A stretch of DNA of 64,000 nucleotides from Hyaloraphidium curvatum SAG 235-1 (lineage: Eukaryota > Fungi > Monoblepharomycota): assembly GCA_025558095.1 (NCBI GenBank), contig JAIVFI010000046.1, positions 120,332 through 184,331 on the forward strand, written 5' to 3'. The notes beneath the pieces are model-generated. The model saw only the letters and a list, made by a program, of their open reading frames with translations, did not search any database and was not told the DNA's origin. Made by a program: the position numbers and the translations under genes. Shown in pieces: positions 3,859 through 55,608 of this stretch (position 1 is the stretch's first letter; every line of letters starts with the position of its first letter).

Positions 3859-5972
3859 ATGGCGCTGACTGACCTCCTCCTCGGCGCCGCCGCGCTCGTG
3901 GCAGGCTTTTACGTTCTCAAATACCTGTTCTAGTGGGTGGAACCGCGGTTCGGCCGCCGCGAGGCCCGCAGAGTAACCCACGTTCAATCCGCGTCTTGGC
4001 CACCGCGACTCCACAGCCGCCTCTTCCTGGACTTTGGCGATGATATCAAGGCGTGTTCATGGTTCGTCTGGCGATGTTCCGGCGGTCACTGACGTCCCTC
4101 ATCCAGACCATCCCCATCATTCCGCTTATAAACTATCCGGAACCCAAGAAGATTCCGATATTCCATCGCGCCGGACTGGAGCGGATGAAGGAATGGGGTG
4201 CGGTCTTCCGGACGGTCAACGTCCTCAAGCCGTGGGACAGGAGTTTCTCGATCGCGGACCCCGTGGGTGCGGTTGCCCGGGACGCCTTGCCGGTCGACCG
4301 ACCAGGGCCTTCTCGCCCAGATGCTGCTCAAGGAAATCTTCGTGGGCAAGGACTGGGAGATGTGGCAACGCGGGAGCTACATCGGGAAGCCCCACTTCCC
4401 CTACACCGAGGGAACTATCAGCGATAAGAGTGGGTCATCGGCCAGAAACAGCGCTGTCCGGACGGGCTGATCACCTCGTGCCTCCCAGACAGCAAGCGGT
4501 GGCGGGACACCCGGGCCATGTTCGATAGGACATTCACGACGGTCTCGGTCCGCAAGTACACGCCGATCCTGCTCAACCTGCGCAACACGTTCCTCGAGGT
4601 CTTGGCCAAGCAGAACGCCGACCACCCCGAGGGATTCGACTTCTTCCCCAGGGCCCACAACTTGACGTTCGACGTGATCACTGTTGGTGCTTTGCTCGCC
4701 AGTTTCGGTCCGCGCTGACATCCCCTGGCAGCGACTCACTTTCGGCGCCGAGGTCAAGGCCCAGACGACCGACGTTGGCCGCGAATATTCGACCCGCTTC
4801 GACCGCTGGCTGTCGAACGCGTCCATCATGTCGCTGCTCATCCTCATGCTCGGCGAGTGGTCGCACTTCCTCATCCCCAAGGCCGTGAAGGAATGGAAGG
4901 AGGACGGGGACATGATGTTCGGTCTGCTCCGCGGCGAGGCCGAGCGGGCGAAGCGGGGCGAGGCGCCGCCCTCCATCCTTGCGGACGCGTACGCGATCTT
5001 CAACTCGGAGAAGATGCCCGAGACGATCGACGAGAAACACCTCCAGGCCGCTTTGGTGAGGCGGGAAGGCGCCCACGATTATTGGGTTCTTGTCCTTACA
5101 GTTCTTTCGTCGCCGCGCAGATGAGCATCCTTTTCGCTGGTTCGTGCTGGGCACGGCTGCCCTTCAAGCTTTACTCACCCGCCATCGCCTTCAGGACACG
5201 ACACGACGGCTGCCCTCCTCTCCTTCGCCGTGTACGAGCTCTCGCGGCGCCCGGATCTGCAGCGCGCCATCCGCGCCGAGGTCCTCGAGGCCGCCGGCGA
5301 GGGCGAGCTGTCGAACCTCGAGGTGCTGGAGAAGTGCAAGGTCCTCAACGCGTGCATCAAGGAGACCCTGCGCCGCTACCCGGCAGCGCCCCACGGCGGC
5401 GGGAGGGTGATGGACGAGGACTTTGAGTTCCGCTACACCGACGTTTATGGGCAGAACCGCAGGATCAGATTCATGAAGGGCGACAGGGTGAACCCGTTGG
5501 TGACTGCCGGCGTTGGAGACCAAACTATCAGCTGAACATTCCATGCCAGCTACATCTATGGGGCGCAGAACTACGCCGATTTCTGGGGCAAGAACCCCGA
5601 CGAGTGGTATCCCGAGCGTTTCTACACGGAAGCAAACGGCGATTCGAAGAACCTGTGGGCCTACGGTGGGCTTTCCGGTCGCCCCCGCTGCCAAGCGAGC
5701 TGCTCTGACATCGGAATCCGACCAAACAGCTCCATTCGGCAACGGGGCCCGCCGTTGCCTCGGCGAGCGGCTTGCCCTTGGGGAGGCGAGGCTCGTGCTC
5801 GCGTCCATGATCCGGAAGTGGGATATCGAGCACGTGCCGGGAACGCCGTTCAGCGAGAGTGAGTTGGTGTTCTCCGGCAGGCTGCCCACCGTCTGACGGG
5901 AATACAGTCTACGCTGGCACGATCAAGCCGAACAAGGTGATGATCCGGTTGAAGGAGGTAAAGGAGATGTAG
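3859..5972 (+). CDS. Cytochrome P450, multi-exon
   Basis: N-terminal anchor MALTDLLLGAAALVAGFYVLKYLF; I-helix AG|HDTT across an intron; KETLR (ExxR); PERF; heme motif PFGNGARRCLG. Confidence 0.92.
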
Positions 5973-9917: not shown

Positions 9918-11447
9918 ATGTCCACCGCTCAGACCATCGAAATCCCGCCCGTGAGCGAGAAAGATGCCGACTTCCAGCCCGAGGAGTGGCTGGCTCTATT
10001 CCCCGCCCCATCTCCCCCTGTGCCGACCTTTGGCGACGAGCCGCAGAGCGCGTGCCCCGACGACGCGGCGCGCGCGGCGGACCCGCTGACGCCCGACGGT
10101 ATCCTGCGCGACTTTACCGGAATGGCGAGTGCCGCGGCGTGGCCCGCGTTGCGCGTGTGCGCCGCGCTGCCTCCTTGGATCCTTCCCACCGGTTTGGCCG
10201 TCTGCGGTGCTGCGAGCGTGGCACTCCTCGGGGTCTCTATCACGTTTGCTGGGGACCAGTTTGAGGCCGAGGATTATGCCCTGGGGATCGTTGGGGTGGC
10301 CTTTTTCTTCGGATGGGGCGCGGTCACCTTTGCTCTGGCCTCGGGGGGGCCTAGGAAGCAACATCCTCCGCAACGGTGTGCTCGATTTCTCGCCTCCGGC
10401 CGCCCTTTGCCGGTGGCTGCCGCTCGTTCGTCCGCGCAAAGCCCCGGATACCCTTTCCGCCTCGCCTGTCGTGCGGCACGTTCCGGGCGACATCTCGTGC
10501 CGGTGTGGGTCCTGCTGTCGCTGGGCCGGGCGCGGGTCGTGGCTCCTTTCCTTCCTTGATTTTGCCGTCAACACGGCCATCGCCTGGACTGCCTTCTTCT
10601 TCATCGGCTACACGCCCGTCGTGAGCTACCGCTCGTCCCTCTGGTCGACGTGGTACGGCATCCTCCTCGGGACCATCTGGGCCGCCTTGTTCCCCTTCTA
10701 CGCCATCCTCGCCTACGTCCGTGTCCTGCACATCGACAACGTGGCGCGCGCGGCGCTCGAGCGGCGGCTGCACTGCCGCGCGGTGGACATCGCCATGGGC
10801 GACCTGCTGGGCCGGTTCCGCCGCGCCGCAGCGGCAGGCGATCCCCCGCCGCGGACGGACTCGTGGCTGTACGTCAGGCTGCACTACCGGTTCGCCGCTC
10901 TGTGCCGGTTCAGGCGGCAGCAGGACTCCGTCGTCATCTCGCGTCTGTACGGCCTGATCTTCGTGCCGGGTCACGTCCTCTTCATTGCACTCTTCGTCGT
11001 GGGTGTTGCTGCTCGTTCGAGCGACGGATCTGGAGCTGACACATGCGTCCCGCGCAGGCCGTCGGACGCTGCATCGCGGCCTGGCAGCTGGCCCTCGTCG
11101 CCCACGCCGCCCTGTACTTCACCGTCAACGCCGTCGATCTCGCCTCGCGGAACCAGCTGATCGATGCCGTCGCTGCGGTGTACCGCGACGCCCAACGCGA
11201 ACTCCGCGCGCTCGCCCTGCGTGCGGGCCCGGGACCCCTGGCCGCCGAGCTGGAGCTGCACGACCGCGCGGTGGCGTCTTTCCTGGATGTGGCACACTAC
11301 CGCGCCCGCCTGTTCGGGTTCGTGGTCTCTTTCGGGACCGTGAGGACCATGCTCGTCACTGGGCTGACGGTCGCGGTGGCGCTGTGGAGCGTGCTGCGCG
11401 CGTTCGGCGTGACGGCGACGCTCGAGAGCTTCTGCCCTGCGGCATGA
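9918..11447 (+). CDS. Gustatory-receptor-like 7TM protein (7TMIC/GRL candidate), copy A, apparent +1 frameshift
   Basis: Seven hydrophobic segments and C-terminal ASFLDVAHYRARLFGFVVSFGTVRTMLVTGLTVAVALW. Intron at ~10999-11057. Removing one G from the G7 run at 10343-10349 restores SGGLGSNILRNG, which matches the paralog at 26780-28301. Confidence 0.65.
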
Positions 11448-11739
11448 TGTTGAGGGCAGAGTTGGGACAGTGTTCAAACCTCAATGGATATCAGGAGCCT
11501 TGACTTGAATCTTCGTGGTGGGACGAAGCGACTAGGAGACCGTGAAGTGGGACCTCAAGGCGGGCATGGGCCGTAGTCTCGGCGAAGAAGAGAGCATTCT
11601 AGTCGGAAAGAATATTGCAAATGTCCCCTTGCTTGGCAAACCTGGGAACCTGGGCCCCTCACATATGCTTCGGCGGGTCTATCGACCTCGCCACCGGCCG
11701 GCCCGTAAACAAAGATCCCTCGCTCTGACTCCTCCCGAA

Positions 11740-17449: not shown

Positions 17450-19106
17450 TCACCGGCTTTTCATCTTGTACTCGATGATCGCAGGCTCCGCCGGCCTCAT
17501 CACGCCCATGATCTGCTGCTCGTTCCCAGAGACGGGCTTCACCAGCTCGAACTTTTCGAACCTCTCGACCATGTTGACGATCTGCATCTTGATCACCTGT
17601 GTGGCCACCTTCTCCCCAATGCAGGCGTGGCGCCCCGCGCCAAAGACGAACAGTTTGCCCTGCCGCGCGAGCGACCTGTCGATCCCCCCTCCCGAAGCCA
17701 GATGCCTCTCCGGCCTGTACGCCCCGTCCGAGAAGAGGTGCTCGAGGCCGTGTAAATGGGAGGTCTTGAGAAGTAGGATCGAGCCCTTGGGCAGGTGCCG
17801 CCCGCCGAGCACCGCGTCGGACATGGCGCGGCGCACGCGGAGGCGTTGACCTTGACGCGCAGGTTCTCGCGGAGGCAGGCCTCGATGAAGACGAGCGAGT
17901 CGAGCAAGGAAGCGTTCATGGTCCCTTTGGCAGCGAGATCCGGATGCGCGAGGCGGGCTTCGGCGATCTCGGCCTTGGCTCGCGCCATGTGCTCCGGGTG
18001 GGACACGAGGTTGATCATCGTCCTTCACGCTGCCATCAGCACACAGCAAAGAGACTGCACTGTTTGTGGTTACTTACCAGCAAGCCGTCGCAAACGTATT
18101 GGAGTTGGCTGCAATGATGAGAGAGACAACCATGAAGGTCTGGTCGAGGCGGTCATCCGAAGCCACTCTCCAACAGCCGCAGGTGTGTCTCACCAGGTAC
18201 TCCGTATCCAGCACCGCTTTGTCGTCGTCCGCAACCAGCTCGTCCATGAGGTAGCGGAAAAAATCCCTCTCCCCGTCCTTCCCTGTTTGCGCTCGCGCCA
18301 TCCGCTTCTTCGCGACCTCGCTGACCATCGCAACCAGCCGCTCGTGTGCGGCCATGACGTTGCGCCCCTCCGCCGTCCAATGGAACAACCAGCGAGGGAG
18401 GAGGGGGATCCAGGGGCCACGCATGAGGCCTTCCTGCGGATCGACGATGCGGACGTCCTCGCTGAAGCGACGGAGGGCATCCGCGTCCAGGTCATCTTGT
18501 CCCATGATTGCCTGTATGGTATTTGTTTTCGTCAGCTCGTTGGCGACTGGTGCCCCCTCCGGCCAAACCACCTTTGCCAGAAGCTCCGTGGTTAGATGGT
18601 ACAAAGTCTCAAAGACGTCGAATTCCCCGCTCTCCGGCCACGAATCCATGTGCTTGTTGAGCTCCTCGAAGACCACGGCGATGAACCTGCCGTGCTTGTC
18701 CGGCGACACGGCGCGCGCCATCTGCACACATCCTCCTCGACTGCTCGTCCCCCGCCATCTCGCGATGGTTGAAGTTTCCGATGAGCAGCCGGATGCCCTC
18801 GAACATGCTGAGCTGCTTGCAGTTGATCAGCTCGGGTGTCGCCGCGTCGCCGACGGCGAAGTGCAGCCGCGGCAGGAGCGGGATCCGCGGCAGCGCGACG
18901 ATGCCCGCGGCGGCGATTTCCGGGTCCGCGCGCAGCTCGTCGAGCACGGCGTCGAAGTCGCCAGCGTGCTTTCGGAGGAGCCCGACGAGGCGGAACCGCC
19001 CGACGCGGGGGGCCGGCTTGGTCCCGGGCGGCGGCGGGGCCTCGCGTCCGAACACGAGCAGGGCGGCGATGCCGAGGACCAGGAGCGCCGTCGCATACTG
19101 GATCAT
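17450..19106 (-). CDS. Cytochrome P450 (CYP51/CYP7-like heme motif), apparent 1-nt deletion
   Basis: N-anchor MIQYATALLVLGIAALLVF; I-helix IIAANSNT; RENLR; YRPERH; FGAGRHACIGE. The frame breaks at ~17841 between ExxR and RRAMSD...LPKG, with no room for an intron. Confidence 0.82.
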
Positions 19107-21729: not shown

Positions 21730-23679
21730 ATGTTCAAGTCGACTTTCCTCCTCGTCTGTCTGCTCGCCGCGCGCTCTTCCGCCGCGCCCACGCTCCGGCC
21801 GCGGGCCGCGGCCTGTGTCGATGTCGGCGCCACGCCCGAATTCAACAACTCCCTCTCGGGCATGATCGGCCACCGCCTCGAGACGACGGTGTTCGGCGTC
21901 ACCAACGCGCAGTGCAACGCCATCTGCGAGGACTACCCCGCGCTCTGGGGCATCCAGTACTCTGCCGAGATCCAGTATGGGGGACAAAATGAATGTGTCT
22001 GTTTCGGCAACATGACGACGCCTTTGTCGTCGATGCCGACCTCGACGGCATGTGGGCCGTGCTCCAACCCGCCCGGCGCGAACGAGACGTGCGGACAGGC
22101 CAACGCCATGAACGGCTACATCCTCGGCGCGCCGCTCGAGCCGGTTGCCAACCCGCAGCCCCAAACGTGGGTCATTCCCTTGCTTCCCCGCCTTCTTCTC
22201 TCTAACGCTTTCTTGCTCCGCAGCACCTGCATGGGATTCGGCTCCACCGGTCCCACGGGCGTCGACAACACCTGGGGCGGCCGCCTCCAGATCAACACTG
22301 GCAACCCCTCCATCAACGACGCCCGCTCCTGCAATGCCTTCTGCTCCCAGACCTCGGGCAACACGCACTCGTCGATGGTGCAGATCGGCGGGCAGCTCGG
22401 CTGCGTTTGCGCCAAGCTGAACTCGACCGACCTGGCCTCGATGACCGCGTCCTCGGCATGCGCCGCCTGCGAGGTCATTCCGCCCAGGATCCCTGCCCCC
22501 GTGCTCGGTTTGTCTCCCGATTGTATCTTTGGCGGACTGTTCCTGATGCCCCCTTTCGCAGGCACCTGCGGCATGGAGAACGCCATGAACGGCGCAATCT
22601 CGGCGCTCGCGCTCGTCCCCGTGAACGGCAGCGCCCCGATCACCCCTGTTTCGGGCTGCTTCGATGTCGGCGCCACCCCCGAATTCAACAACTCCCTCTC
22701 GGGCATGATCGGCCACCGCCTCGAGACGACCGTCTTTGGCGTCGGCAGCGCGCAGTGCAACGCCATCTGCGAGGACTACCCCGCGCTCTGGGGCATCCAG
22801 TACTCGGCCGAGATCCAGTACGGCGGGCAGAACGAGTGCGTCTGCTTCGGCAACATGACGACGCCCCTGTCGAGCATTCCGGCCTCGACGGCGTGCGGGC
22901 CTTGCTCCAACCCTCCCGGCGCCAACGAGACGTGCGGCCAGGCCAACGCCATGAACGGATACATCATCGGCGCGCCGCTCGAGCCCGTCGCCAACACGCA
23001 GCCCGCAACGTGGGACATTCTTTGCTTCCTCGCCTTCTTTTCTCTTACGCCTGCTTATCCTGCAGCACCTGCATGGGCTTCGGCTCCACCGGCCCCACGG
23101 GCGTGGACAACACCTGGGGCGGCCGCCTCCAGATCAACACGGGCAACCCCTCGATCAACGACGCCCGCTCCTGCAACGCCTTCTGCTCCCAGACCTCGGG
23201 CAACACGCACTCGTCGATGGTGCAGATCGGCGGGCAGCTCGGCTGCGTCTGCGCCAAGCTCAACTCGACGGACCTTTCTTCGATGACCGCGTCCTCGGCC
23301 TGCGCCGCATGCGAGGTCATTCCCCCCAGGATCCCTGCCCCCGTTCTCGGTAAGCCTACCGACCTTGCCTCTGGTCGATCGTCTCTGATCTCCCCCCTCA
23401 ACAGGCACCTGCGGCATGGAGAACGCGCAGAACGGCGCCATCTCGGCCCTCGCCCTCGTCCCCGTGAGCGGCACCTCCCCCAGCCCCATCGTCCCCACCC
23501 CGACGGCCACCTCGACCGGCTCGGTCGGGCAGACCTCGGCCGCCACCACGGCGTCGGCGTCCGCGACGGCGACCACGTCGGCGCCCGCGCAGTCGACAAC
23601 GTCGAGGCCCAACGGCGCGGGGAGGACGGCGGCGGGGATGGGGGCCGCTGTTGCCCTTGTCTTTGCGGCGCTGCTCTGA
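21730..23679 (+). CDS. Secreted, probably GPI-anchored protein with four WSC-like Cys-rich domains
   Basis: Signal MFKSTFLLVCLLAARSSA. Domains follow CxxxC...QYGGQNECVCFGN...C..C....ETCG. Ser/Thr stalk and hydrophobic C-terminal GAAVALVFAALL. Confidence 0.8.
21814..23467 (+). repeat. Internal tandem duplication (two ~810-bp units, period ~843 bp) including introns
   Basis: 21814-22624 and 22657-23467 encode near-identical domain pairs, with introns at equivalent positions. Confidence 0.85.
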
Positions 23680-26656: not shown

Positions 26657-26779
26657 TCGGGCTGGGGGCGGCAAAAACGGGGGTGTATGCGACGCGCCTG
26701 GCGGGGCATCCAACAGGCAGCCGGCCAGGAATGTAATGAGAACGGTACATACGTGCGCTTCACCGTCACATCTTGTCCA

Positions 26780-28301
26780 TCAGGGGGCCGGACAGAAGCT
26801 CTCGAGCGTCGCGCTGACGCCGAACGCGCGCAGCACGCTCCACAGCGCCACGGCGACCGTCAGCCCCGTGACGAGCATCGTCCTCACCGTCCCGAACGAC
26901 ACCACGAACCCGAACAGGCGGGCGCGGTAGTGCGCAACGTCCAGGAAAGACGCCACCGCGCGGTCGTGCAGCTCCAGCTCCGTTGCCAGCGGTCCCGGGC
27001 CGACGCGGAGGGCCAGCGCGCGGAGCTCCCGCTGCGCGTCGCGGTACACCGCCGCGACGGCGTCGATCAGCTGGTTCCGCGAGGCCAGGTTGACGGCGTT
27101 GACGGTGAAGTACACCGCGGCGTGGGCGAAGAGGGCCAGCTGCCACGCGGTGATGCAGCGGCCGACGGCCTGGAAGGGGCGCATCGGTCAGCTAGGGGTC
27201 GACCGCTCGTCCAGCAGCTGCAACGCTCACCGCGCCCAACGCCGCAAACAGGACGACGCCCGGGAAAAGGACGAGGCCGTAGAGGCGCGAGACGACGACC
27301 CAGTCCTGCTGCCGCCGGAACCGGCACAGGGCGGCGAACCGGTAGTGCAGCCTGACGTACAGCCACGAGTCCATCCGTGGCGGGGGATCACCCGCCGCTG
27401 CGGCGCGGCGGAACCGGCCCAGCAGGTCGCCCATGGCGGTGTCGACGGCGCGGCAGTGCAGCCGCCGCTCGAGGGCCGAGTGTGCCACGGTGTCGATGTG
27501 CAGGAAGCGGCCGAGGCCGACGAGGACTTGCAAGGGGAACCACGACGCCCACAAGATGGTAAGGAGAATGCCGTACCACGTCGACCAGAGGGACGCGCGG
27601 TAGCTGACGACAGGCGTGTAGACCATGAAGACGAGCATGGCCAGCGAGATGCCCGTGTTGGCAGCGTAATCGAGGAAAGAAAGCAGCGCCGACAGGCTCT
27701 CGATCCAACGGCAGCACGACGCGCACGGACAGGAGGCGTCCCCTTGCACGTGGCGCACGAGTGCCGGGGGCGCGGATGATTCCCGGGCGCCGGGCCCGCG
27801 AAAGAGCCGCATCCACCGGCAAAGCGCGGCCGGGGCCGAGAAGTCGGCGACGCCGCTGCGCAAGACGTTGGACCCGAAGGTGACCGCGCCCAACGCGAAG
27901 GTGAAGGCGGCGCCGAAGATGAAGTAGGCGACCCCGGCGGCGCCGAGCGCGATGTCCTCCGCGGCAAAACGGCCCTCGACGAACGTGGCGGAGACGCCGA
28001 GGAGCGCCACGCTCGCGGCACCGCCGACGGCCAGACCGGCGGGAAACACCCACGCCGGCAGCGCCGTGTGCACGCGCAGTGCGGGCCACGCGACCGCCCT
28101 CGCCGCACCGCTCAAAATGCTCAACATGCCGCCGGGCGTCAGCGGGTCCGCCGCACGCGCTGCGTCGTCGGGGCACGCGGCCTGCGCCTCGTCGCCAAAG
28201 GTCGGCACGGGGGGAGACGGGGCGGGGAACAGCGCGAGCCACTCCTCGGGCTGGAAGTCGGCATCCTTCTCGTTCGCGGGCGGGAGTTCGATGGCTTCCA
28301 T
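26780..28301 (-). CDS. Gustatory-receptor-like 7TM protein (7TMIC/GRL candidate), copy B, intact
   Basis: Inverted paralog of 9918-11447. Seven TM-like segments, one intron near 27170-27230, and an almost identical C-terminal TM6-TM7 region. Confidence 0.7.
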
Positions 28302-42176: not shown

Positions 42177-45100
42177 TGAGGAGGGGAAGGTGGTCGTCCT
42201 GCCCGCGGAAGTGGGCGAGGGTGCCGGCCGCGGCCGACACCCAGCTACGCTCCCTCAAGGCGGCGTCCTGCATCGCGGGGAGGGGGTAGACGCCGCGCAG
42301 GCGCGCGATCGCGTTGTCGATAGTCGCGCGCCAAGTCAATGCGGATGCGGGGGCGGGCGTGGGCGCGCCAGCGGGAGGTGGCACGGGTGCCGGCAGCGAC
42401 GGGGAGGGCGACGCCGTCGACGGGATCGTGGCCGCGGAGGCAGGTGCAGGTGCAGCGGGGGCATGCGCAAGGGCGGGGCCAGCAGCGGGTGTAGCAGTGG
42501 GCCCCGCTATAGGGTCACGCGGCTTGGGCCTGGGAGGTTCCAGCAAGCGCTGACGGATGGCCGACTCGTCCAGGTAGAGACGCACGAGGTCGGCAAGCCG
42601 GAGCCGGGCTGCCTCGACGAGCTGCGGCTCCAATGCTGCGTGGGCCCAGAGGCCCTTCCACATGTCGGGGTCGTCGAGCTTGTCGGCACCATCGCGGGCG
42701 ACCAGAGCGGCGAACGCGAGGTGGAACACGGATCCCTTATCCTCGCAGAAGCGCCCGATCCGCCTCGAGCGCCCGAACGCGGTCGCGAAGCGCTCCTTCT
42801 CGTCGCACGCCCTTTTCCGCCCGGCGCTTGCACCGTCAGCAAAGGTGCCCGTGCCTGCAATAGGGTGGCGCCATCAGCTCGACCGGAACCGCGACCACGG
42901 CGTTGTCAGTCTCCCACAGGCATTCATCTCCGGACTCCACAGCCCCACCGCCTTCAGGTAGCGGTAGATGACGTCCGCCACCCCCATGCGGTTCGTGATC
43001 TTCTCCTTGCCCTTGAGGGCATTCTGCAGCTCTGCCATCCCCTTGCGGGTGAGGGCCCCGTCTTGTTTGGCCTGGTAGGCCTGCTCCCAGGTGTGGAAGC
43101 CCCGCGTGAATCCGAGGAAGATGTCGCTCTCGATCATGCCCGTCAATCCCGACGCCACGACCAGGCGCGGGATTAGCGCGAGTAGATGGTTCCGCGCCGC
43201 AATGCTCTCGGCGCGAACCGCAGCGAGCAGCGCCTCGGCCTCCCCCTTGGCCATCTTGAAAAGCGGGGAGCCGGAGGACCGCAAGGTCGGGCCGCCGGGC
43301 GCGGAGCCTTCCGAGGAGGCATCGTCGTCCAAATCCATGGCGTCCTCGTCGACATCCATGGGGTCGAACTCGCACTCCTCGTCGCTGCGTTCGCTCTCCG
43401 AGTCCGCGCGGTCGGCGGCGTTGCTTTCAGGGCCCAAGCCCGGCGGCCACTCGATGTCCTCCTCGTACTCGCCGTCGTCCTCGTCCGCGGGGCGCGCGCG
43501 GCTCCCCTCCAGCTCGGCAGCGGGGATCAGGGGCGCGTCGGGGGCGCCAGGCCACGCCTTGATCCGCAGCTCCACCGCGTCGAAGACGTCCGTCTCCGTG
43601 CTGCGGAGCGACCAAGCTGCCGCCCATTCATCCTTCAGGCGGCTCTCCACGGCATTTAAAAGAGCCGAAAGGAACGCGCGCCCGGCTGCGGCCCAGGCGG
43701 GGTCGCGGAGCAGCGCATCCGTCGGGGGAGGGACGCGCGTGGCGGCGGGGCCGGGAGCCTTGGGCCGCCGGGGCCTGCCGTGGCTGGGTTTCGGCGGAGC
43801 GGGGTTGGTGCCGTCGCTCTGTGCCGCCTTGCGCTGCTTCTTCGCCCTTTCGGACTTTCGGTGAGGGTGGTCGGCGGGGGAGGGGTGGGGGAGCTTGTCG
43901 GCTGCGGTCTGGCTGACGGTGAGTCCCCAACCCGACCCTCAAAACGACTCAAGCCCACCTGCAGCTTCCGCTTGGTCGGCACCGTGCCGCCGCCACCGCC
44001 ACCATCCCCCTCGCCGTTGGCTCCCTCGCCACCCTCCCCGCCGGCGTCCTCGCCCTCCGCGCCGTCCGCGGCCGGCCCGGAAGCGGCACGGCGAGCGGCG
44101 TCCTGCTCTGCGCGGCGGGCCTCCACCTCGTCCTCGAACGCCTTCTCCGCGGCCCTGACGGCGGCTGTAAGAGAGTGGATGGAGGCGTCCGACTCGGAGA
44201 CGAAGTCCGCGTTGTGCAGGAGGGCGAACTTGACGATGTCGGCGTCGCCGACCTTCTTGAGCTCGAAACGCTTCAGCGCCTGCGTCCCCGTGAAAGTCAC
44301 GCGGAACAGGTCGAGCAGCCGCTGGAGCCGCCTGTCGGCGCGCTCGACCTTGATCTCGCCGTTCTCCGTGTAGACCATCCCCGTGTCGGACGTGGTCTTG
44401 GGCGGGGGCTGGCCGATGCCCTCGGCCTCGACCGCCTCGGTGGACGCGGCCTCGTACTCGTCGCGGCCGGCTGCCAGGTCGACGTCAGCGCGCGGAGGAC
44501 GACGATTTCGCGGGATAGCTCACCGTTCTTGAACGCCGCCTCGTGCTTCTTCTTGGCCTTCTCGGCCACCTCCACAGTTGTCACCCGATCAACGTTCGCG
44601 TACGTCACGCGATGCACGCGCACGAAGGCGTCCTTGGGTCGGCGTACGCTGCCCGTCGCGTAGACCACCTCTGGCGGCTGCCTGATGAGGGGGATGTCTG
44701 GCCGGAGCGCGGGGAGGGTGGGCTGCGCCGCCGCCAGGCTGTCGGGGGCTGCAGATGCCAGAGCAGGATCGGGCGTCTCCGCGTGCTCAACTGCATGCCC
44801 GGGCGCGGGTCCGAGGGCTGAGGCGGCGTCCTGCTCCTCGGCGGGAGTGGGCGTGGGATCGGGTGAGGGCAGAGGCAGCGGGGTCTCGCCGGTCGTCGCC
44901 GTCGCGTGCGTTGCCGGGATCCCGGCCCCGGCGGCGGAACCGGCATCGTCCTCCGCAGCCGGATCGATGTCCTCGGGGTCTTCCGGGTCCTCGGTAAGCG
45001 GGGGGTTCGCAGGGATGGGCTGGTCCCAGGGCATGAGCTTGCCCATCTTGGCGAGCGTCCAAAGCAGCTTGGGGATGCATCCGTCGGTCATACGATTGAC

Positions 45101-46171
45101 CCTTCTTCCGAGCGAGCGAGAACTCACCGGGGGGTTGCTCGGGCCATCTGAACTCGCACCAAACTGGGCGGATGCCGCCGCCAACAGCGCCGCCAACGCT
45201 GCACCATGCATCCAGCCGACACCCGCAGTAGCCTGCTGCGAGTCCGTGGCGGCCGTGGGCAGGGGGAAGAGGGCGAGGAGAGCCAGCAACATTGCGAGGA
45301 GAGGCATGGGGGCTACGGCGCTGCGGCGGGGGAGTCGTGGCGTCGGCCCCCGAGGCCGGTCCACGGGCGGCGTGTGAGCCAGGGCTTTCACGACGCACAG
45401 GCGCAACCTTTGGGCCGCTGATGCCCGAGCCCGCGACAGCCATTCCACCACAGCCGCGGCAATACGCCACAGCACGGGCGCCCGGATCTTGGTTGTCGCG
45501 AGACGCGGCGCTCCGCCGGCTTTCACCCGTACCGTCGGCGTCAACGGGCTGCAACGCGGACGGCAGCGCGGGCGGGGGGTCATGCGCCGACGAGGCGAGC
45601 GGCGGCGGCGGCCCAGCAACGGTCCACTGGCACGGCGCCGCGCGAGGCGGACGAGCCCGGCGGCAGACAGAGGTGACAGGATACATGAGACTGCAAGGAA
45701 TGCAAGCGCCGCGGAGGCGAGCAACGGGGTGCAGACGATCGTGGGGAAAAGCGCGGCGGCGGCGAGGGGGATCACAACTCGCAGGGCGGCGATGAAGGCG
45801 AGCGCCGCGACCGTACGGGGCCAAAAGAAGAGTATGTCGATATGTGCGCCGAGGAGGGTGGTGTCCGTCGGCCGGAAAAGAGGCGAAGTGTCTGCGGAGG
45901 TAACGAACGGGGTCGCGGAGAAACACGGGTCCGGGACCCGCGCGATGCCAATCCCGGTCGCTTCGAAGCACGCCAGCGCGACGGAAGCACCGTAACCGGC
46001 GCAGTCGGGATGCGCGATACCAGGCCGCGCCCGGGCGGTCTGCCATGGTTGGATTGCCTGGATCAGCCGATGGTCGAAGACTACGGCCACGAGGAGGACG
46101 AAGAACGGCGAGACGGCCGCGACGAAGAGGCGGGCCAATCGCCGACGATCTCCAGGGGTCGCCGAGCCCAT
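42177..46171 (-). CDS. Large orphan multi-exon gene, apparently 3'-truncated; possibly mobile-element cargo
   Basis: Protein-like ORFs 44297-46171, 43656-44378, 42874-43650 and up to 42729 are linked by intron-like gaps. The last frame runs with no stop into the antisense of the mucin-like gene at ~42175. Confidence 0.5.
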
Positions 46172-46289: not shown

Positions 46290-47999
46290 CTTTTCGCCAC
46301 CACAACCTCCACCTCTCAACCCACTGTCCGGCGCTCGATCGGGGACCATGCTCGCCGTGCTGCCACCATGGTTTTGCAGTCTACCGCTTCCCGACCCATT
46401 CCGCCTATCTACCGCCGGGCGCTCGGCGTCCCGCGCGCTGTCTCACATACCACGCCGCAGAGCCGCAGATCCTGGCGGCGGCCCGTATCCCGATGCAGGT
46501 TTCTGCCTGAGGGCCGCCGCCCCGGCCGGGTGCAGTCTCGGGCCACCGCAGCGTTCCGCGCCCGAGCCGACCGTGGTGATCTCCGAGGTCACCCCCCTCG
46601 CGGCCCAAATCACAGCTCGCAGCAGCGCATCCGCGTTCATATCCAATATCCCGACGCCGCTTCGTGTCCGAATTACTAGGACGGGTCCGATGGGCCGCTA
46701 CATACGGTGCTTTTCTGGGCGGTTTGGGCCCCCGCGACTCAGCATGTCGCGGCACGTCGCACGGCCCCATCCACGCCACGCACCCGAGCTCCCGGCTTAA
46801 TATCCCGAAGATCCACCACCGTCCAGCTCGCAGAGCACGCGGTTGGCCCGCAGCGGCCTCTTACCGGGGCCCCACCAACCCCGCCCCGGAGCGGCGATTT
46901 TTGTTTTTGATTACCTGGAGATTGAAAAATCTATTAAGGAAAATAATGTTTACTGACCCGAATCCGGAGCCCGTTTCCACGCCATTTTGCGCGATTCTGG
47001 CCCATTCCCGGCTCTCCTGGCGCGTCTCGAGACCTCCCGATTGCCTCCCTGGTGCTCGATGTGGAGTTCTGCGGCGCCGGGGTCCAGGACATGGTGCTCT
47101 TCCCGGACCTTGCGCGGAGTCGCCTCGCGGGCTGCAGTCCTCCTGGAAACACGGTTATCCGATGATTTTATCTTTTCTATGGAGCAGTTGGCCAGTGGAA
47201 CCTGAAGCAACGCGTTTCCGGACTCTTGGGGCACGGAAAACCATGCACATCTCCTCGCTGTGACGCGACGCGGGTGCCTTCGAGCACCGCGCGCCGAGAG
47301 CACTTTTGGGAACCTTTAGAAACCTCAGGCACGGGCGGAATGGGCCGCGTCGCTCGTGTGCTGCAGGATTTGGCCGGCTCGAAGTTTGTCGCGCTCGCCC
47401 TTCGAATGTGCTCATTTCTTGGCTCTTCGCTCCGTCGGATGTTCGTTGGAGGGAGCTCTTTCAGCGTGTCACGTGGATCTTATGGCGGGCTCGCTGCTCA
47501 CGGACTGTCGACGCTCGAGACGCGCTGCGCGCCGTTGGCGCGATCTACCTGTTGGAATCAAGCGCAACGGGTTCTTTGGTGAAGAGAGCAAATGTCGTTT
47601 TTGATTGCTCTTGTTTGGGGCTTCACGCGAGGGACGCTTGGTCCCCTGGTCACCTCAGATGTGGCCAACTTTTCGCCCACACTTCAGAACCCCTCCCGAG
47701 AAGCGGCTGGTTGCCGAAGATGGAGAACACAACATGCAGGATTGCCGATGCCATGTCGACGAGCAGCTCCGTGGCCGATGGTGACCTGTCTGCCTCCTCG
47801 TGTACGTTTCCGGCAAGACCATCTAGATTTCGCGGGCTTGGCATCAAAGACGGAATCAAATGAATGGAAATGACTGCTTGAAACACAGATAAGGATGCAG
47901 TAATGTCGAGGAAAGGATTACAAGAGGATATGGTCTATCTTGGCATCTGCCCCGTCCTCCGCGCCTCCCCACCCCTGGCACAGATCGTGAACGCCCCGT

Positions 48000-49053
48000 T
48001 CACGTTTCCAGTCTTGCCATTTGCTCCGCAACCGCCGCTTCGAAGCTACCGCCGTCCCTGGAGGAGAAGAACTTGATCGACTTGATCGTCGCCTTGACCA
48101 AGTTCCCGTTGGTTCTCAGCTTTCCTGGGTTCCGATGATTGACGTTCACGGAGTGCTTGGAAAGCAGATCCGCGTACTCCCGCGGCTCCCGTTTCTGGCC
48201 TTTCCGAAGAGCTGACAGGTGGAAGGCGGCAAGCAAGAGGAACTGCTCTCTCTCAGCCGGATGGTCCACGATATTCAACGGTGAAGCTTTCCCGTTCGAA
48301 CGGGCGCGTCCGACGAGGTCACTGGAGCTGAACGAAAGGCGTCGCGTGCCGTCAGGCATGGTCGCCTCGAACTGCGTCCCGAACGGGGAGTGGAGCGAGA
48401 CACCGATGCCGCGGCGCACTCGCTGAGCAACGGATGTCTTGGTCCGTTCGCGAACCTAAAATGAACAATGATTAGAGGTGCTACGCCTTCAAAAGACGGG
48501 GAAAGCTCGCCTGTTCGCGCTCAAACTGTGCCATGAGCGAGTTCATTGCGAGTGACAGCCACGAAGTAGCCGACGGCGCCGAGCCGCTCCAGAAGAAGGT
48601 CAGCTCGGGCTGGTTGACGCAAACGAAGGATTTTCGGGCCTGGGTGAGCTCCTGAATGTAGCTGTGGGTCGCAACCATGTCGCGAGACAACCGGTCCAGC
48701 CGGACGACGACCAGGCCGGCGTAGTCGTTCGAGGCGAGCAAGGAGACGAATGCAGCATGCAATTCCTTCCGTTCGAACGCCCCAGGCCCCTTGGGCAGTG
48801 CCCCGCTGGCCAGTTCTTCGTGCACCGCGACGACAATGTCCCCGCGCGCGGTTGCCCAGTCCCGGATGATCCCGATCTGATCCACGAGCGACAGATTGTC
48901 GCTCCCGTCGTCCAGCGACTTTCTGACGTAGGCAATCCAGCGCAGGCCTCGCCCAGATCCGAGCTGGGCCGCCGAGGCATAGGTTCCGAACTTTCCAACG
49001 AGCGAAACGAGGTGGGACACGTCCAGCGCGCTGGAAGCATGCTGGGGCTCCAT
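48000..49053 (-). CDS. Serine recombinase (resolvase catalytic domain + recombinase-domain-like extension), two exons
   Basis: IAYVRKS (YxRxS, Ser codon 48916-48918), SLVDQ, EELASG, ERKEL, VVVRLDRLSRD, MAQFEREQ|VRERT, G...SPFG. A 55-nt GC-AG intron at 48456-48510 joins ORFs 48481-49071 and 48000-48419 in frame, giving ~332 aa. Confidence 0.88.
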
Positions 49054-49622
49054 CTCCGCCCAGAAGGACAATCAGCGGCCCGCAATGAAGCAGGAGAGGG
49101 CCAAATGCAAGCTCGATCGGGATGAGGAGGCGGTGGCGGGTCGGTTTCGGTCCCTGAAGCGCGACAGACGTTCCGCCGAGAGACAGGGGTACCAGAGCGT
49201 CACACACACGAACTGAGCCCGCAACCGGCTTGAACATGAGCGCGAGCGACCATAGACGGGCCGGAAAGTGAGGAGGAAGGGGTTCAAAGACGTCAGACAA
49301 GGGTGTCGAAAAGGAGCTTCGCGGCACCTACATCGCGAGGCCCCCAAGCACTGTACAGCCGTTGGCTGCCCCAACGGAGGCACCGAGGATCTTTTTCCGG
49401 TCCAGATAGGAGCGAGAATGGGGGAGAACACGGCCGTTGGTCAGGATTCGTGCCACGAAACGGCGGAGCACGAACCGAGGGGGAAGGAATGTTCCGATGC
49501 GCCGCCGTCCAGAGGCAGTAGGAAGCAGACGACAAGGCCGCTGGACGTCCGGCTTGGTGCTCTCTCGTGGCAACCGGTCGGGTCTCCAGCCATCGCTATC
49601 GGAAACCGAGCGGAGTTCGGGG

Positions 49623-49654
49623 GAGTCTATCCAAGGGCTCCCTTGGATAGACTC
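49623..49654. other. Perfect 15-2-15 inverted repeat; candidate recombinase crossover (att/res-like) site
   Basis: GAGTCTATCCAAGGG-CT-CCCTTGGATAGACTC. The arms are exact reverse complements around a 2-nt centre. Confidence 0.6.
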
Positions 49655-50872
49655 TCTGAGACCCGCCGCCGAACCGCGATCTTGGAACTTCACTACACGC
49701 TATGCTAGTGCTCGGTTCTCCTCCCCGAGACCAACTAGGATAGAAGAGATGTTGTACTTCCCTCCCTGGGGAACTCAAGGCCAGTCATTGCTATTCAGGT
49801 CGCAGGACCGCCGAATGTGAGCGAGCGTCCCGAATTCACGTCCCGTCGAGCCTGGTGGGGAAGGGACGATATGGAGGAAACGCCTAAATCCCGACAAGAG
49901 CTAATCACATTTACATGCGTGGTTTGGGAGCGCAAGAAGAGCTCCGCAGGTCTTATTCACTCTGGGCCGGGCTTGACAGCTGCACACTTGAATGGACGTC
50001 CGGCATCTCGTCAATGCCGAGCAGCAAGATGCTCGAGCGTTCTAATGTACCATACATGGTTCAATAAAGTCATTCCGATGGATGATGCTTTCTTCCATCC
50101 TCTACTGGTCAGCGAGCGCTCCCAGAGCTCCATGCACGGCATGCTCAAGTTTGGGACCTCGCGGAGCCCCGCATGAGGACGTGAAGTTGTCCACAGCTAT
50201 GAGGCGTTAGAAATGCATATAAATACGCGATTTGTCGAAAAGCCGCGTCGATTGAATCGCCTGTGCGTGAACGCGGGCGGTCGGCGCGGACCCATTTTGG
50301 CCGATTTTGAGCCGTTCCGGAGCCATCCCGCTCACAAAAACGCAATGCAGCACTGCGAGGCGTGCCGATTCCTCAAGTAGTAGTATGAAAGCGTCGAATT
50401 CGGCCTGCATCTCAATTTAGGTCCGCAGCACCTCGGGGACCCAGACCCCCCCCCTCGTCAGTGGAAATTGACGCCGATGGCGCGCAACCACGCACCAAAC
50501 CCGGTCTGCTCCGCGCAATACGCTGACTCGATGTAAATAAGTGCGCAGAAGCTAGAACGGCTACCGGCCATCGATTTTCGCTTGGTGTAGGTGGTCCAGC
50601 AGGTCAAGACTAGCAGGTCCGACGCCCTCCCCCGATGTAGTGCCACTTTGCGCCGGTGTGTCGAGCTCCTCAATCCTGTCATCAAGCACATGCCTTTCTG
50701 TGCATCGCATTACCTCTCTACCATGGCCGCTGGAGCCGATTCAATCACTTCTATGGCCGCATCCGAGCACATACGATCGCCTTCCGGGTCCGTGTTCACC
50801 AGGACGGTCAATGGGGACTTCAGATGAGTTGCCCTGCTTGAATTCCACAATGATATACATGAAACCGATCTA

Positions 50873-53800
50873 CTACTTCGGGAATTCCGTCACAAGAACC
50901 ACCTTCAACGCCTCGTAGGCCGTCAGACGGGGGCCACGCAGCGTGGCATCCTTGGCATCAAGGAGGTCGAGAAACTCTCCCTCCAGGTAGGCCCAGTCGG
51001 GACCTCCATCTTCCGCGCGGCGCGTGCCGTAAGCGGGGATGGTAATCTTGCGCTGCGTGTCGTCGCTACGGCGAAATCCATCATCGCAAAGGCCCAGCCG
51101 ATGGACATGAGCAGCCCGGGATGTCTCCTCCTTGAGCTGCCCGCAGCGCCGACATAGCTGAGCTTCATCCTTTGGGGCATGCCCTCGCACCTTGGGCTTC
51201 GCGGGTTCCATGGCCGAAACAGCAACTTCCGGCAGGGTCAACGAAGGAGCGACCTGTCGGTCCAACTGACGTTAAACCACCAGCGCGACGGCAGAGAGAA
51301 GCCGGTATGCCGCTCACCGACACAGTCGAAGCACCTTGGACGAGCTTCTGGGCCACATGAGCGAAGGCAGCGAGGAGGGCCTCGGCCCAAGCCTCTTTCG
51401 AGATCTCGGGCGGCAAGTGCAGGGGCCTCGGCACGTGCTCGAGCAAAGCGGGCCCAGCTGCCAATGTGGAAGCATCGGGTAGAGCCAGAGACGATGTTGT
51501 CCCAGGCGCCGGCGGCATGGCCCGCTTCTTAGCCGCCGGAACCGACGTCGAGGCCGGCCGCGGTGCCGCCGGCGAATCTGCCCGTCCCTGAACCGAATCC
51601 TCACGTTTCCGCTTGCCGCTCAAGGCCATTGCACCGCTTGACGGCTGAAAGGCGACGGGCAAGGGCGCCGGCGTCCTGCAAAAGACGAGGGATGAGCCCA
51701 GAAGCCGAGATCCGAAAATGGCGTCCACCCACTCCAATACAGGCTCCACAGGCCGGTTTAGAGCCTGCACGGGCGCGGAAGAGAGAGAAGGAACGACGGG
51801 AACCTCCAGCGTGTCTTCCTCCATAGGAAACGAAAGAGGCTGGCTTGCAGCGGCAGTAGAGGCAGCCTTCGGCGACATTTGGCTCGAAGGCCCGGTTGGA
51901 GACGAAATGACCGGCGAGAACAAGCCTGAGGTGGCTACAACGGCGGACCCGAGCTAATGAACGCAGACATGTTGAGTAGACCATGAATCCACTCCATCGC
52001 AATCATTTACCTGGGCCACAGTGCGCTGAAACTCGGCCTTGATGCCGTAGTTCGGCGCGGCTCTACCACGAGCTTTCGGAGACGGCGACGGCTTGTGCGA
52101 AGGACGACTTTTCGGAGTGAATCCGCGAGGCGAGGCGGGCCGCGCCTTCGGGACAGCCGGATCCTTTTCCCTTTCGGCGACGTGGGCCTGCTGGTCCCGG
52201 ATCGCCTTCCCGGCTTGCCGTGCTTCCGCCGAGGTGACGGCACGAATCTCAAAACACTCGTGATCCTCCAGAAGCGGGTTGCATTGTGCAGGGTGACCAT
52301 TCTGGCGAGCCAAGCGGTTCCGAGCTTCCAGCACCTGGCAAAGAGCCGGATTCCTGCCCAACTGCTGGGCGCAAAAGTCGCCGAATTTGATGCGCAACAC
52401 GGTCAGCATGTAATCGAGATCGAAATGGTCAATCTCCTGCAGGATGGTGTCCTCGAGTTTCGCGTGGCGGCCGAGCCAGTCCTGCAGAAGCCGAAAATAG
52501 CCCTCGAGACGATTGCTTCCCCTAGCAACCATCACTGAGCCGTCTGCCGCGATGTAGAACAAAATCTCTGGATCGTCCAAACACCCCTTTTCCAGGTGCA
52601 CTCGAGCGTTTGCCCAGTTCTTCTCAAACACCTCGACCTTCTTTGGAGGAAGACCGCCGTGGTACCGAAGAGCTTCGTTCTTAGCGGCGTCGAAGGCCTT
52701 GATGGCTTCCTCGCGTGGCAGCATCGGCTGCGGCGTCTTCTCCCGCTGGGGAGCTCAACTCCCGGGAACTGAATGGAACTCCAAACGATGCCGATGATCT
52801 TGTCCTTGACAAAATCCGTGACCCCGACGTCCTCGCAAATCCGTTGCACCCAGTGGAAATGGTCGAGACGTACGACCTCGAGATCGCCAAACACAGCCTT
52901 CACGAGTGGGGCTAAAGAGCCCGGCGAGCCACAGCACCGGTCCACTTGGAGCACGATGACCGAGTCCCCGGCTCCTCAAAGGCGCCGACAGATTTCCCCG
53001 AATCAAGCTTCTTTCCGTCGATTCCACGGCCCGCAGCTTTCTGAGCCCGCAAAGAGTTACGAAGAACCTCTAGGCCGTGCTTGGCTGCGTCGTCACCCTT
53101 GTTCCGGGCCATGTACTGCGAACGTCGTCAGAAGCTCCGCTGCATGGGCAGCGCGGAGCGGCTCACCGCGCCAAGAGGAGTACCAGTCACGGTGATGTAC
53201 TTGATCAGCTGAGGTTTGCTGCTCATGGACTCGGCCGCCACGCGGCCGCCGTTCACCTTTGCAGCCGCATCCTTCTCGGCATCCGCGGCAGCACCGCCGT
53301 CAGCATGCTTGCTGGAGTTGAGGGCCTTGTGGCCCCCATTCTCCTCGTCGTGCACGTAAGCTTGGTGCAGTGCGGTCTTTTCCAGTCCGTCCTGCGCAAT
53401 GTTCCGGCCTGCGCGGCGGAGATGAGCCAATTAGCGAAACCAAATCCGTTCCGCCAGAACCCACAGTCAGCCTGGTACTGATATGAGTGGAAAAGATGGT
53501 CGCCGTATCGGTTCCAAACTGCGTCGTGTAGACGAGTCACAAAAGCAGCGTCGATCACATCCCCGGCCATTCTGACGCCAAGTCAACACACAGGCGAAGG
53601 CTCAGCCCGAATCGCGGCCCAACTCACGAGAATTCGTCCTCCATTGACTCCTGGATCGACTGCGGCTTCTTCCTCGCTCTGCCGGAAGAGGCCGGCGAAC
53701 GTCGGTACGGTCGTGCCGTCGGAGGGCCCCGCCTGAGAAGGTGCCGAGTCGTTTTCAGCCGAGTCTGATCTCACGACAAAGGAATCTATGCTCGTTTGCT

Positions 53801-54888
53801 TGGATCCCGAAGAGTCTATGGGAACGGAGTCACAGCGTGTCCTCACGATGCCACACAAAAGGTTACCTGAAGAGAAGAATGCGCTGGTCGTCTCCGCATC
53901 CGGCATGGGGCCATGCTTCCCGTGGTGTTGAAGGTGCAGCGCGACGACGTGATGTTCGGCCTCCAGGTCGGCTGGAACCGAGATGTCACGAAAGGGCAAG
54001 AACCAGTTCAGAAAGAGCCGTACCGTTCAGGATCTTGGCCGCCATGCCCGGCCCGCACTCGTTCACCAGGTTGTAGACCTTCGAGAGGAACGACATGTGC
54101 ACGTACGAGTGGCCGACCCGTTCGTAAGGGAACACTGCCGACGAATGATTAGCAAGGTCGACAAGATCGATCAGGGAGCGGTTCCTACCGACGTAGCGCA
54201 GGTCCGCGGGAATTCTGTCGAGCAGGTTGTGGGCACCAATCTGGAAGGTGCACTTCCCCGCCTTGGCTTCCCCAAAGTTCTCGCAAACGTATCGCCGGGG
54301 GCAAAGAAGTTCCAACTCTCCATGGGGCCCACGCATGAGGAAGAGATCTTGAACCCAAGCACTGGGCTTCAGCTTCAATCCGCACGTCGGACAAATGAGC
54401 CGCGCCAAGTCCGGGTAGCCCTCCCAGGGAGAAAGGATGAAGGTCGGCCGAAGCGTCACGAGAGAATCCATTTCCGGGGTTCCCGGCCCGTTGAGGACCT
54501 TGAAAATCGGATCCCCTCCATCCCGGAGGACGAAGCGCTCCGGATGACGTCGTAGATCGAAGGGAAAAGGCTGGAGACCATGGGTGAACGGGGTAACCTT
54601 CTTCCCCGGCAACCTCCTCTTTTGGGCGGCCGAGAACTCGAGCTGGAAGGCCGTTCCGTGCTGAGGACGCCCTTCTGGAGGTGCCTCGCCCGCCGAAGCT
54701 TGTGGCTGCTGTCCGGCGGGCTCCCCTCCGCTTTCCGGCTGCCCGGCCGGCGGCGCTGCGGTCTTTGGCGGGCGACCGCGCTTCTTCGTCTGCTTTGGTG
54801 CGTCCGAAGCCTTCATCGCGGGGACCTTAGCCTTCTTCACGCCGCCAGAGACCTTCTTCGCGCCGCCCGTGTTCCGGTTCCGACCCAT
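50873..54888 (-). CDS. Zisupton/KDZ-superfamily DDE transposase, multi-exon
   Basis: AT-hook KRGRPPK; DUF6729-like CPTC...W...RRYVC...C...LLDRIP; spliced IAQDGLEK; VDRCC...VRLDHFHWVQR; HLEKGCLDDP...ARGSNRLEGYF; C-terminal CRRCGQLK...H...C finger. Confidence 0.75.
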
Positions 54889-55206
54889 GCCTCCGCTGGC
54901 CCGAGAAGTCGCGTCGAGACGCGACGGTTCGGATCAGTTGGCCTCGTCTTCGGCGCCAGAGTCCTTCCTAGAGCTCAGACTGCCCTGCTTGCAGTCATTC
55001 CCGTCCAGAATGTCCCCAGGGGATGCTTCAACAGAGGCCTCGTCTCCTCCCGGGGAGAGGAAGCTATAAACCGTCGCGACACGCGGGAAGGCGAGGCTCC
55101 TCGCGACAGTAGCGTTGATTCGAGGGCAGAGAAGGCTACGCCGACGCGCGTCTGGGACGGGGCCGGCGCGCAGGTGGCCTCTCAGGGGGTTTGGCCCGGT
55201 GGGGGA

Positions 55207-55272
55207 GGGTTGGGGAGGGTTGAAAGAGGGTTGAAGAGGGTTGAAGGAGGGTTGAACCGGGTTGAAGGGTTT
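55207..55272 (+). repeat. Array of GGGTTG(AA) motifs at ~10.4-bp period
   Basis: The motif starts at 55207, 55217, 55228, 55238, 55249 and 55259, with a degenerate copy at 55267. Confidence 0.85.
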
Positions 55273-55608
55273 GGTCTAGTAAACAGATCTATATCACGCC
55301 GCCCACGCCTATCAAAGCCTGTCATCTCCTCGGGCATCCCCCGCCCAAACTACCGGCGCCTGCGGCACGGGTTAGTTTCCTCCCGCCTTTTTGCGACAGG
55401 CGCCACCACTTCCCGCGGCGGCCGTTGTTGCCGGAAGGGCACACGGCCGGGAGGTCGTGACGCCTATCGCGACGCCACTCTGTCCTCCCCACGCTTCAAC
55501 CTCTCACACATATCTGTGCTGCTGCCCAATCAGGTCCCGTGCTGCCGTCGGCCATCCCTACCATCACCGGCTGCTTCGTAACCCGATCCGGGTGAGGACG
55601 CCGCCGCG

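Follow-up and report, generated by a model that had tools for sequence, protein, structure and literature searches.

Transposons of the Tn3 family combine a DDE transposase, TnpA, with a serine recombinase, TnpR, and its res site; they generate 5-bp target site duplications (TSDs) and end in 38-bp inverted repeats. The Tn3 resolvase carries a small C-terminal helix-turn-helix (HTH), and res contains accessory sites. Cointegrate resolution is taught as a bacterial device, and eukaryotic DDE transposons as cut-and-paste elements. Dada elements, which insert in tRNA or snRNA genes, have been described without a resolvase (Kojima and Jurka, 2013; PMC3706591). Among zebrafish Dada-tL copies, 8 of 12 are flanked by mismatched sequences, a finding that the authors explained by one-ended transposition (PMC3706591). 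In the ISAzba1 group of prokaryotic Mutator-like elements, which have 18–39-bp inverted repeats and 8–9-bp direct repeats, a C/DxxH transposase is accompanied by a serine recombinase that has been proposed to resolve cointegrates (PMC3942029). Serine recombinases of the IS607 type (TnpA) are found in eukaryotes, in Fanzor2 elements (PMC3627910) and in Saccharomyces kluyveri (PMC2715888); they are themselves the transposase and have an N-terminal DNA-binding domain, and Fanzor2 elements lack TSDs (PMC3627910). Finally, large serine recombinases (LSRs) and enzymes of ~230–340 aa with a catalytic and a recombinase domain occur in bacteria, phages and giant viruses.

Here we analysed a 64-kb stretch of DNA (the window), the last 64 kb of contig JAIVFI010000046.1 of the monoblepharid fungus Hyaloraphidium curvatum. 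The best explanation of the sequence comparisons, to which we give a probability of roughly 0.6, is that a spliced serine recombinase encoded there would be the resolvase of a Dada-related transposon of zoosporic fungi. The gene is composed as follows.

48511–49053, minus strand: recombinase exon 1, catalytic domain with Ser46 (Pfam PF00239, E = 6e-13; Ser conserved across the clade)
48456–48510, minus strand: 55-nt phase-0 GC-AG intron in helix E (GC donor, CTAAT branch, TTTAG acceptor)
48000–48455, minus strand: recombinase exon 2, with the remainder of helix E, the SPFG arm and a clade-specific putative DNA-binding domain (alignment to the clade; AlphaFold model)

Exon 1 (181 aa) contains, on the minus strand, the full catalytic set that the earlier note had read from the letters: YVRKS (aa 42–46), SLVDQ (55), ELASG (80), RKEL (95), RLDRLSR (118) and FEREQ (177), with the codon of the nucleophile Ser46 at 48916–48918. 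Its score of 49.5 bits against Pfam Resolvase (PF00239), well above the cut-off of 23.3, bears out the assignment. With its Y-x-R-x-S and D-R-x-x-R motifs, the window protein belongs to the serine recombinase superfamily, and the catalytic Ser and Arg residues are kept throughout the clade alignment. The gene shows purifying selection (nonsynonymous changes, 4 of 13; p = 0.0009), and a homologue search returned a matching record named Hyaloraphidium curvatum resolvase. For the window recombinase, each exon was taken on its own in scans, searches, alignment and folding, and full-length homologues from other genomes, led by P0008, were used for alignment, searches and folding; the full-length structure model is that of the intronless P0008, not of the window protein. 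Phmmer of exon 1 against the PDB returned no match; a fold match was obtained for P0008. P0001 and P0003, the latter being the database record of the window gene plus two sister copies, served for exact-identity look-ups.

Homology suggests that the intron would be removed from the recombinase transcript. Joining of the exons gives a product of 332 aa (181 + 151 aa), and the NCBI gene models are of 332 aa over a 1054-bp span in all four H. curvatum copies. The exon split was mapped at the same junction in the sister copy L001, whose protein (P0001, two residues different) was placed piecewise on its locus. Moreover, the ER-x5-RTK register made by splicing is that of the intronless relatives, and in the second recombinase family of H. 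curvatum (L008) the intron at this codon has a GT donor. Exon 2, for its part, aligns with the C-terminal half of the clade's recombinases (hhalign 98.2%, E = 3e-14). The earlier reading of a phase-0 intron whose removal restores a continuous protein of ~332 aa is thus consistent with both the gene models and the intronless relatives.

The segment after helix E had been likened to the start of the LSR recombinase domain. That likeness stands only in part: it is weak and confined to the helix E-PYG-L.V..E start, and the C-terminal domain has no PF07508 match by Pfam or Foldseek. In the direct comparison, hhalign gave 1.5%, rising to 55% with a larger profile and to 88% after post hoc removal of an insert, over the first ~50 aa only. 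LSRs and the shorter two-domain enzymes provide the best sequence and fold matches to the fungal recombinase (TP901-1 catalytic domain, E = 1e-15; serine integrases among the fold matches) and share helix E, followed by G-x4-PYG and an L.V...E helix. In contrast to them, the fungal enzyme has a ~30-aa insert after PYG, a single symmetric site instead of attP/attB, and 332 aa compared with the more than 400 aa of LSRs; it has no coiled coil, and conserved Cys residues are absent from the C-terminal alignment, indicating that there is no zinc ribbon. Folding of exon 2 with its relatives gave a confident AlphaFold model (pLDDT 80), whereas the C-terminal domain alone had no PDB match by sequence or by fold (Foldseek). 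Exon 2 had no Pfam match, and no HTH was found in the 150-aa domain by Pfam or Foldseek.

We also considered IS607 TnpA/Fanzor identity and rejected it. The NCBIfam IS607 model NF033518 gave 18 bits against a cut-off of 110, with a match that begins at model position 55, after the HTH; the enzyme has a DDE transposase as partner, TSDs are present, and no RuvC gene was found nearby. The descriptions of the protein as lacking an N-terminal HTH and an LSR zinc ribbon, and as not being of IS607/Fanzor type, are therefore upheld. Like the eukaryotic IS607-type enzymes, the fungal recombinase is eukaryotic, multicopy and under selection; unlike them, it accompanies a DDE enzyme and has its extra domain at the C terminus. 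It is best treated as its own subfamily.

The element that contains the gene was delimited by comparison of copies.

46893–55300, minus strand: whole transposon, 8408 bp, ends GGCG...CGCC, no long terminal inverted repeats (common to four loci with different flanks)
50873–54888, minus strand: intron-containing Dada-related DDE transposase gene (gene calls; motifs judged by eye against the published Dada alignment, PMC3706591)
55205–55267, unstranded: three 21-bp sub-terminal tandem repeats near the left end (repeat family D5)
55301–55307, minus strand: left flank 7-mer CGTGGGC, the same as the L001 target duplication (flank comparison)
46886–46892, minus strand: right flank 7-mer GCTCCGG, unlike the left flank and the same as the L003 flank (flank comparison)
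53799–53913, unstranded: interval in which the window copy switches from L001-type to L003-type sequence (diagnostic differences)

That the recombinase gene is transposon-borne is almost certain. Four copies of 8.2–8.4 kb are assembled and annotated in H. curvatum (L001, L002, L003 and L004, the window copy), which answers the question of copy number; 7-bp TSDs flank L001 and L002 and are absent from L003 and the window copy. All four sit on large fungal contigs amid spliced host genes, at unrelated loci with no conserved host synteny around them. Targeting of small-RNA genes was rejected, as no Rfam or tRNA match was found at the insertion sites of any locus scanned. The 21-bp repeats are possible transposase-binding sites.

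The window copy is a hybrid. Its left flank and first 1.39 kb are those of L001 and the remainder is that of L003, with 40 diagnostic differences before the switch and 165 after it; its flanks are 100% identical to L001 and 99.99% identical to L003. Identical versions of both flanks exist elsewhere, and 8.7 kb remain from there to the end of the contig; the junction therefore reflects either joining during assembly or recent homologous recombination, and the window copy is possibly an assembly chimera. Formation of this hybrid at the palindrome described below was ruled out, since the switch sits inside the transposase gene, 4 kb from the site. The proposed linkage of the recombinase to VPH1 holds for the contig 9 copy L001, with its intact TSD; in the window, the copy has the hybrid junction.

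Several other features of the surrounding DNA were recorded. The right flank of the window copy (46750–46892) is 75% similar to L003 3309–3436, 320 bp left of the L003 copy. GC-rich ORFs at 42877–46171 had no convincing Pfam match and may be another repeat. Inverted paralogous membrane-protein-like genes of 1.5 kb, 80% identical, lie at ~9934–11449 and ~26778–28294, and an 825-bp tandem duplication lies at ~21818–23480.

The transposase, ~1170 aa in the sister copies, has the order N-terminal CCCC finger, D, D, DxxH, E, C-terminal CCH-C finger. In the window, a candidate for the first Asp lies at ~53468, followed by D (VDRCC) at ~52942, DxxH at ~52864 and E (GSNRLE) at ~52505. Single-base indels unique to the window copy (e.g. 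~53675, 52962, 52743) shift its frame and are probably consensus errors. The finger patterns were read from translations, the automatic alignment of the C-terminal finger being poor. The window transposase had no Pfam or NCBIfam match; its relatives match DUF6729 (E = 1e-6) and DDE_Tnp_ISL3 (E = 1e-4), and the Hyaloraphidium and aphelid cores align with each other (E = 1e-7). A homologue search with the transposase core returned no match under a length filter that leaves out full-length kin.

Likeness to Dada, judged by eye against the published alignment (PMC3706591), includes the DDE triad with DxxH and the motifs VDRxCC, VRLDxxH, H..C..DP and ARGS..LE, N-terminal CCCC and C-terminal CCHC-type fingers, introns and a length of 7–8 kb. 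It extends to the 7-bp TSD (6–7 bp in Dada), the lack of terminal inverted repeats (TIRs), mismatched flanks and tandem copies (PMC3706591). The fungal elements differ in that they do not lie in tRNA or snRNA genes and that they carry a serine recombinase and a site, unreported for Dada. As no small-RNA gene is present at the insertion sites, we use the name Dada-related and do not place the element within Dada. The pairing of a Mutator-like transposase with a serine recombinase is shared with ISAzba1, although the latter is prokaryotic and has inverted repeats.

An exhaustive homologue search showed that close relatives of the recombinase occur in Phlyctochytrium, Chytridium, Obelidium, Rhizoclosmatium, Quaeritorhiza, Amoeboaphelidium and metagenomes. 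In a quick tree of 19 rows, the recombinases formed one eukaryotic branch (SH-aLRT 97); the tree does not single out a donor lineage. A transposase lies beside the recombinase in Obelidium (two copies), Rhizoclosmatium, Chytridium (two loci), Amoeboaphelidium and the metagenome contig SRR22752035, in tandem or convergent order depending on the species. Transposase motifs adjoin the recombinase in L005, L006, L007, L010, L011 and L013, whereas L012 has an N-terminal DUF6729 piece near the recombinase, and tandem element copies. Elements of the same make-up bounded by target duplications were found in Obelidium (two copies) and Rhizoclosmatium, with 7 or 8 bp in L005, L006 and L011, and the elements of these two genera have a similar terminal AAATTCGC motif.

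These data bear on two rival readings. In the first, which we regard as very improbable, the recombinase would be an IS607- or Tn4451-like serine transposase or integrase, mobilising a cassette of its own and nesting within Dada elements. The orientation of the cassette relative to the transposase does differ between species, and L008 has two head-to-head recombinase copies with no transposase found nearby; however, the IS607 model score is far below its cut-off and its match begins after the HTH, the element ends and TSDs enclose both genes, and no cassette boundaries or empty-site version were seen. The second, a domesticated host recombinase for programmed genome rearrangement, draws on the introns, the purifying selection, the eukaryotic clade and the L008 family, which may have lost its transposase. 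It is already largely refuted for the window family and exceedingly unlikely, as all well-assembled copies lie within a TSD-bounded or multicopy element, at unrelated loci and without host synteny. The idea of a eukaryotic site-specific recombination system, put forward in the earlier note, consequently stands in altered form: a candidate crossover site is near, but the gene belongs to a DDE transposon present in several copies, and its clade extends over chytrids and an aphelid, so that the recombinase serves the transposon's system, not the host's.

The ancestry of the recombinase is prokaryotic or viral, and the gene is now nuclear and spliced, as had been proposed. Serine recombinases of Edafosvirus and Bodo saltans virus were among the top structural matches, at 11–17% identity, and the left–right junction in the window may be an assembly chimera. 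These two points would be in line with a contaminant, a chimeric contig or an endogenous giant-virus relic, the probability of which is nonetheless close to negligible given four large fungal contigs, spliced host genes alongside, a spliceosomal intron and relatives in several genera. Scans for matching loci in metagenomes, viruses, prokaryotic genomes and phages gave no match, these pattern scans being insensitive enough to miss the metagenome loci too. An endogenous giant-virus gene was rejected, the flanks being host genes, with no viral loci in these insensitive scans and only distant fold matches.

The second H. curvatum family (L008 7462–12118, contig 9; 38% identity) forms a 4.6-kb palindrome and has a different palindromic motif near both outer ends; a duplicated HgmA fragment lies close by (4150–4523 and 18214–18592). 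It may be a foldback element or a domesticated pair. The Obelidium element at L005 lies within one TIR of another TIR transposon (L005 11450–15997 plus left flank), which has an 879-aa gene and a PHD-like ORF with no Pfam match, and the L006 copy is inserted in a ~1.87-kb tandem gene array. At L007 (3369–8732) there is a 5.4-kb element with perfect 37-bp TIRs, whose ORFs resemble, by eye, a Tc1/IS630-type transposase and a Ulp1-like protease, with no such match in Pfam. A hAT-like transposase, also recognised by eye, lies downstream of the Phlyctochytrium element (L009 5826–9624).

Upstream of the recombinase gene lies the candidate site.

49623–49654, unstranded: predicted crossover site (res site I-like), perfect 15+2+15 palindrome (core recurrence, window scan)

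The palindrome, centred on 49638–49639 (AG on the minus strand), lies 585 bp upstream of the recombinase ATG, and it is the sole perfect palindrome in the 64 kb with arms of at least 10 bp round a 2-bp centre. The core CAAGGG-NN-CCCTTG was exact in five independent loci, namely in Hyaloraphidium, Chytridium (two loci, different elements), Phlyctochytrium and SRR22752035, at 108–585 bp upstream of the recombinase gene and with the centres AG, AT, GT, TA and GA. Between species the outer arms vary; complementarity is complete in three of these loci and partial in the other two. Serine-recombinase crossover sites are built in this way, with constant arms on either side of a free dinucleotide. The proposal of a crossover site next to the gene has thus gained ground, and we consider it likely that crossover would take place at the palindrome. 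Weaker variants were found in Amoeboaphelidium and Obelidium (one imperfect in Obelidium) and none in Rhizoclosmatium or L008. Inspection by eye revealed no further conserved half-sites within 75 bp that could represent accessory sites II/III. In L002, a 277-bp deletion lies about 110 bp left of the site (L002 9260), and the right arm occurs three times over (9389–9432), starting exactly past the central dinucleotide; this may be a cleavage scar or slippage. The Phlyctochytrium site (L009 422–487) is a perfect palindrome of 66 bp whose TA centre is symmetric, the form expected of a left–left join. Contig starts (L009, L010, L013, L014) or a contig end (L012) lie 90–450 bp from the palindrome.

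As an independent test of the site, divergence between paralogous copies was followed along the element, the Obelidium site having been picked beforehand. Between the two Obelidium copies (6.7-kb element), divergence drops from 20% on the left of the site to 0.8% on the right, and the final left-side difference is 27 bp from the site centre. Selection does not explain this step, because non-coding DNA shows it too (13.8% versus 0–2%). For L001 and L003 of Hyaloraphidium, the corresponding values to the left and right of the site are 3.1% and 1.1% (non-coding, 4.4% versus 1.4%; Fisher p = 7e-8), with a loosely placed change point (−399 to +394 bp) whose range takes in the site. The steps are footprints of past arm exchange at or next to the site, and they leave the enzyme responsible unproven.

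An identical divergence step would result if a hairpin-prone palindrome broke and was then mended by homologous repair. The palindrome could accordingly be an operator for autoregulation or a fragile hairpin, with arm exchange by homologous repair and the recombinase as passenger or regulator. Its constant position upstream of the recombinase gene, the local duplication of the right arm in L002 and the exchange (or assembly joining) away from the site in the window copy would suit this. We judge it improbable: the catalytic Ser and Arg are conserved across the clade, the arms are fixed and the 2-bp centre is free, as in a crossover site, and the Obelidium step falls at most 27 bp from the centre in an element of 6.7 kb.

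Compared with Tn3, the fungal element likewise unites a DDE transposase and a serine recombinase, has a crossover-type palindrome with a 2-bp centre just upstream of the recombinase, and shows hybrids formed at the site. It differs from Tn3 in being eukaryotic and spliced, in its Mutator/Dada-type transposase in place of TnpA, in its TSD of 7–8 bp and lack of 38-bp inverted repeats, in a C-terminal domain of ~150 aa in place of the small HTH, and in having no accessory sites that we could see. The element is Tn3-like in logic, not a member of Tn3.

On the resolvase reading, for which the transposase and recombinase travelling as one mobile unit, the 7(–8)-bp TSDs and the conserved palindrome just upstream of the recombinase form the basis, the DDE transposase would nick and strand-transfer without excision, and replication would then produce a cointegrate. 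On linear chromosomes, this would be a reciprocal translocation or an inversion with one element at each junction. A recombinase dimer would bind the two arms of the palindrome, two sites would synapse, and Ser46 would make a 2-nt staggered cut at the central dinucleotide; subunit rotation would then recombine two element copies, so that the left half of each, with the transposase, is joined to the right half of the other, with the recombinase. Recombination between the two sites would restore the chromosomes and leave a simple insertion. A single site lacking accessory sites, and with them the topological filter of the Tn3 type, would suit copies on different linear molecules. Cointegrate resolution is, in our estimate, the probable purpose, and we lean slightly towards an unrecognised class of eukaryotic transposon in which replicative cointegrates are formed and a spliced serine resolvase with a single simple site would undo the translocations.

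As context for the resolvase reading we count the unmatched flanks of L003, which are compatible with a cointegrate intermediate and are not proof of one, and the tandem copies in L012; by analogy, the mismatched flanks of Dada-tL could also fit unresolved cointegrates, and the transposase–recombinase pairing of ISAzba1 elements offers a prokaryotic parallel. Against it stand the window-copy crossover 4 kb from the site, the loose Hyaloraphidium change point, the imperfect Obelidium site, the missing sites in Rhizoclosmatium and L008, the lack of Tn3 res-like accessory sites, and the description of Dada elements without a resolvase (PMC3706591). No cointegrate pair, with both reciprocal junctions, was seen. 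In addition, prokaryotic Mutator-like elements have been reported with circular intermediates, which leads to the main rival: recombination at the palindrome would have another job, namely monomerising tandem arrays or dimeric circles or making circles, with transposition by cut-and-paste or copy-out-paste-in. The site evidence (core and divergence steps) serves this equally, tandem copies occur both in L012 and in zebrafish Dada-U1 (PMC3706591), and circular intermediates have been proposed as general for Mutator-like transposases. It is nevertheless rather unlikely, since a single site per element has no use unless a second copy is there, and that is the situation in a cointegrate, and since the unmatched flanks of L003 and Dada-tL would fit replicative fusion better.

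In the open-access literature that we searched, we found no description of a eukaryotic transposon with its own serine resolvase and site. We propose that these elements are a family of eukaryotic transposons whose resolvase and site are Tn3-like; the family is Dada-related without the targeting of Dada, and distinct from IS607. An element with its own resolvase and site makes replicative movement of a nuclear DDE transposon directly testable. If the resolvase reading is true, Dada-type transposition in general would be replicative, the mismatched flanks of animal Dada copies would be explained, and the element would also give rise to translocations in early-diverging fungi. The clade moreover offers compact serine recombinases (310–370 aa) evolved on chromatin, each with a ~30-bp site that can be predicted and, it seems, no accessory sites, as candidate genome-engineering enzymes.

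A further observation concerns the conserved right terminus of the element (window 46893–46901, L005 11449, L011 11464, L012 12997), which reads GCGA(A/T) on the opposite strand. The same sequence appears in the GCGAAT, GCGAAA and GCGCAA strings that were named TSDs in the Dada paper (PMC3706591). Such Dada "TSD" strings may in part be element ends, which would explain the "replaced" TSD of Dada-tA.
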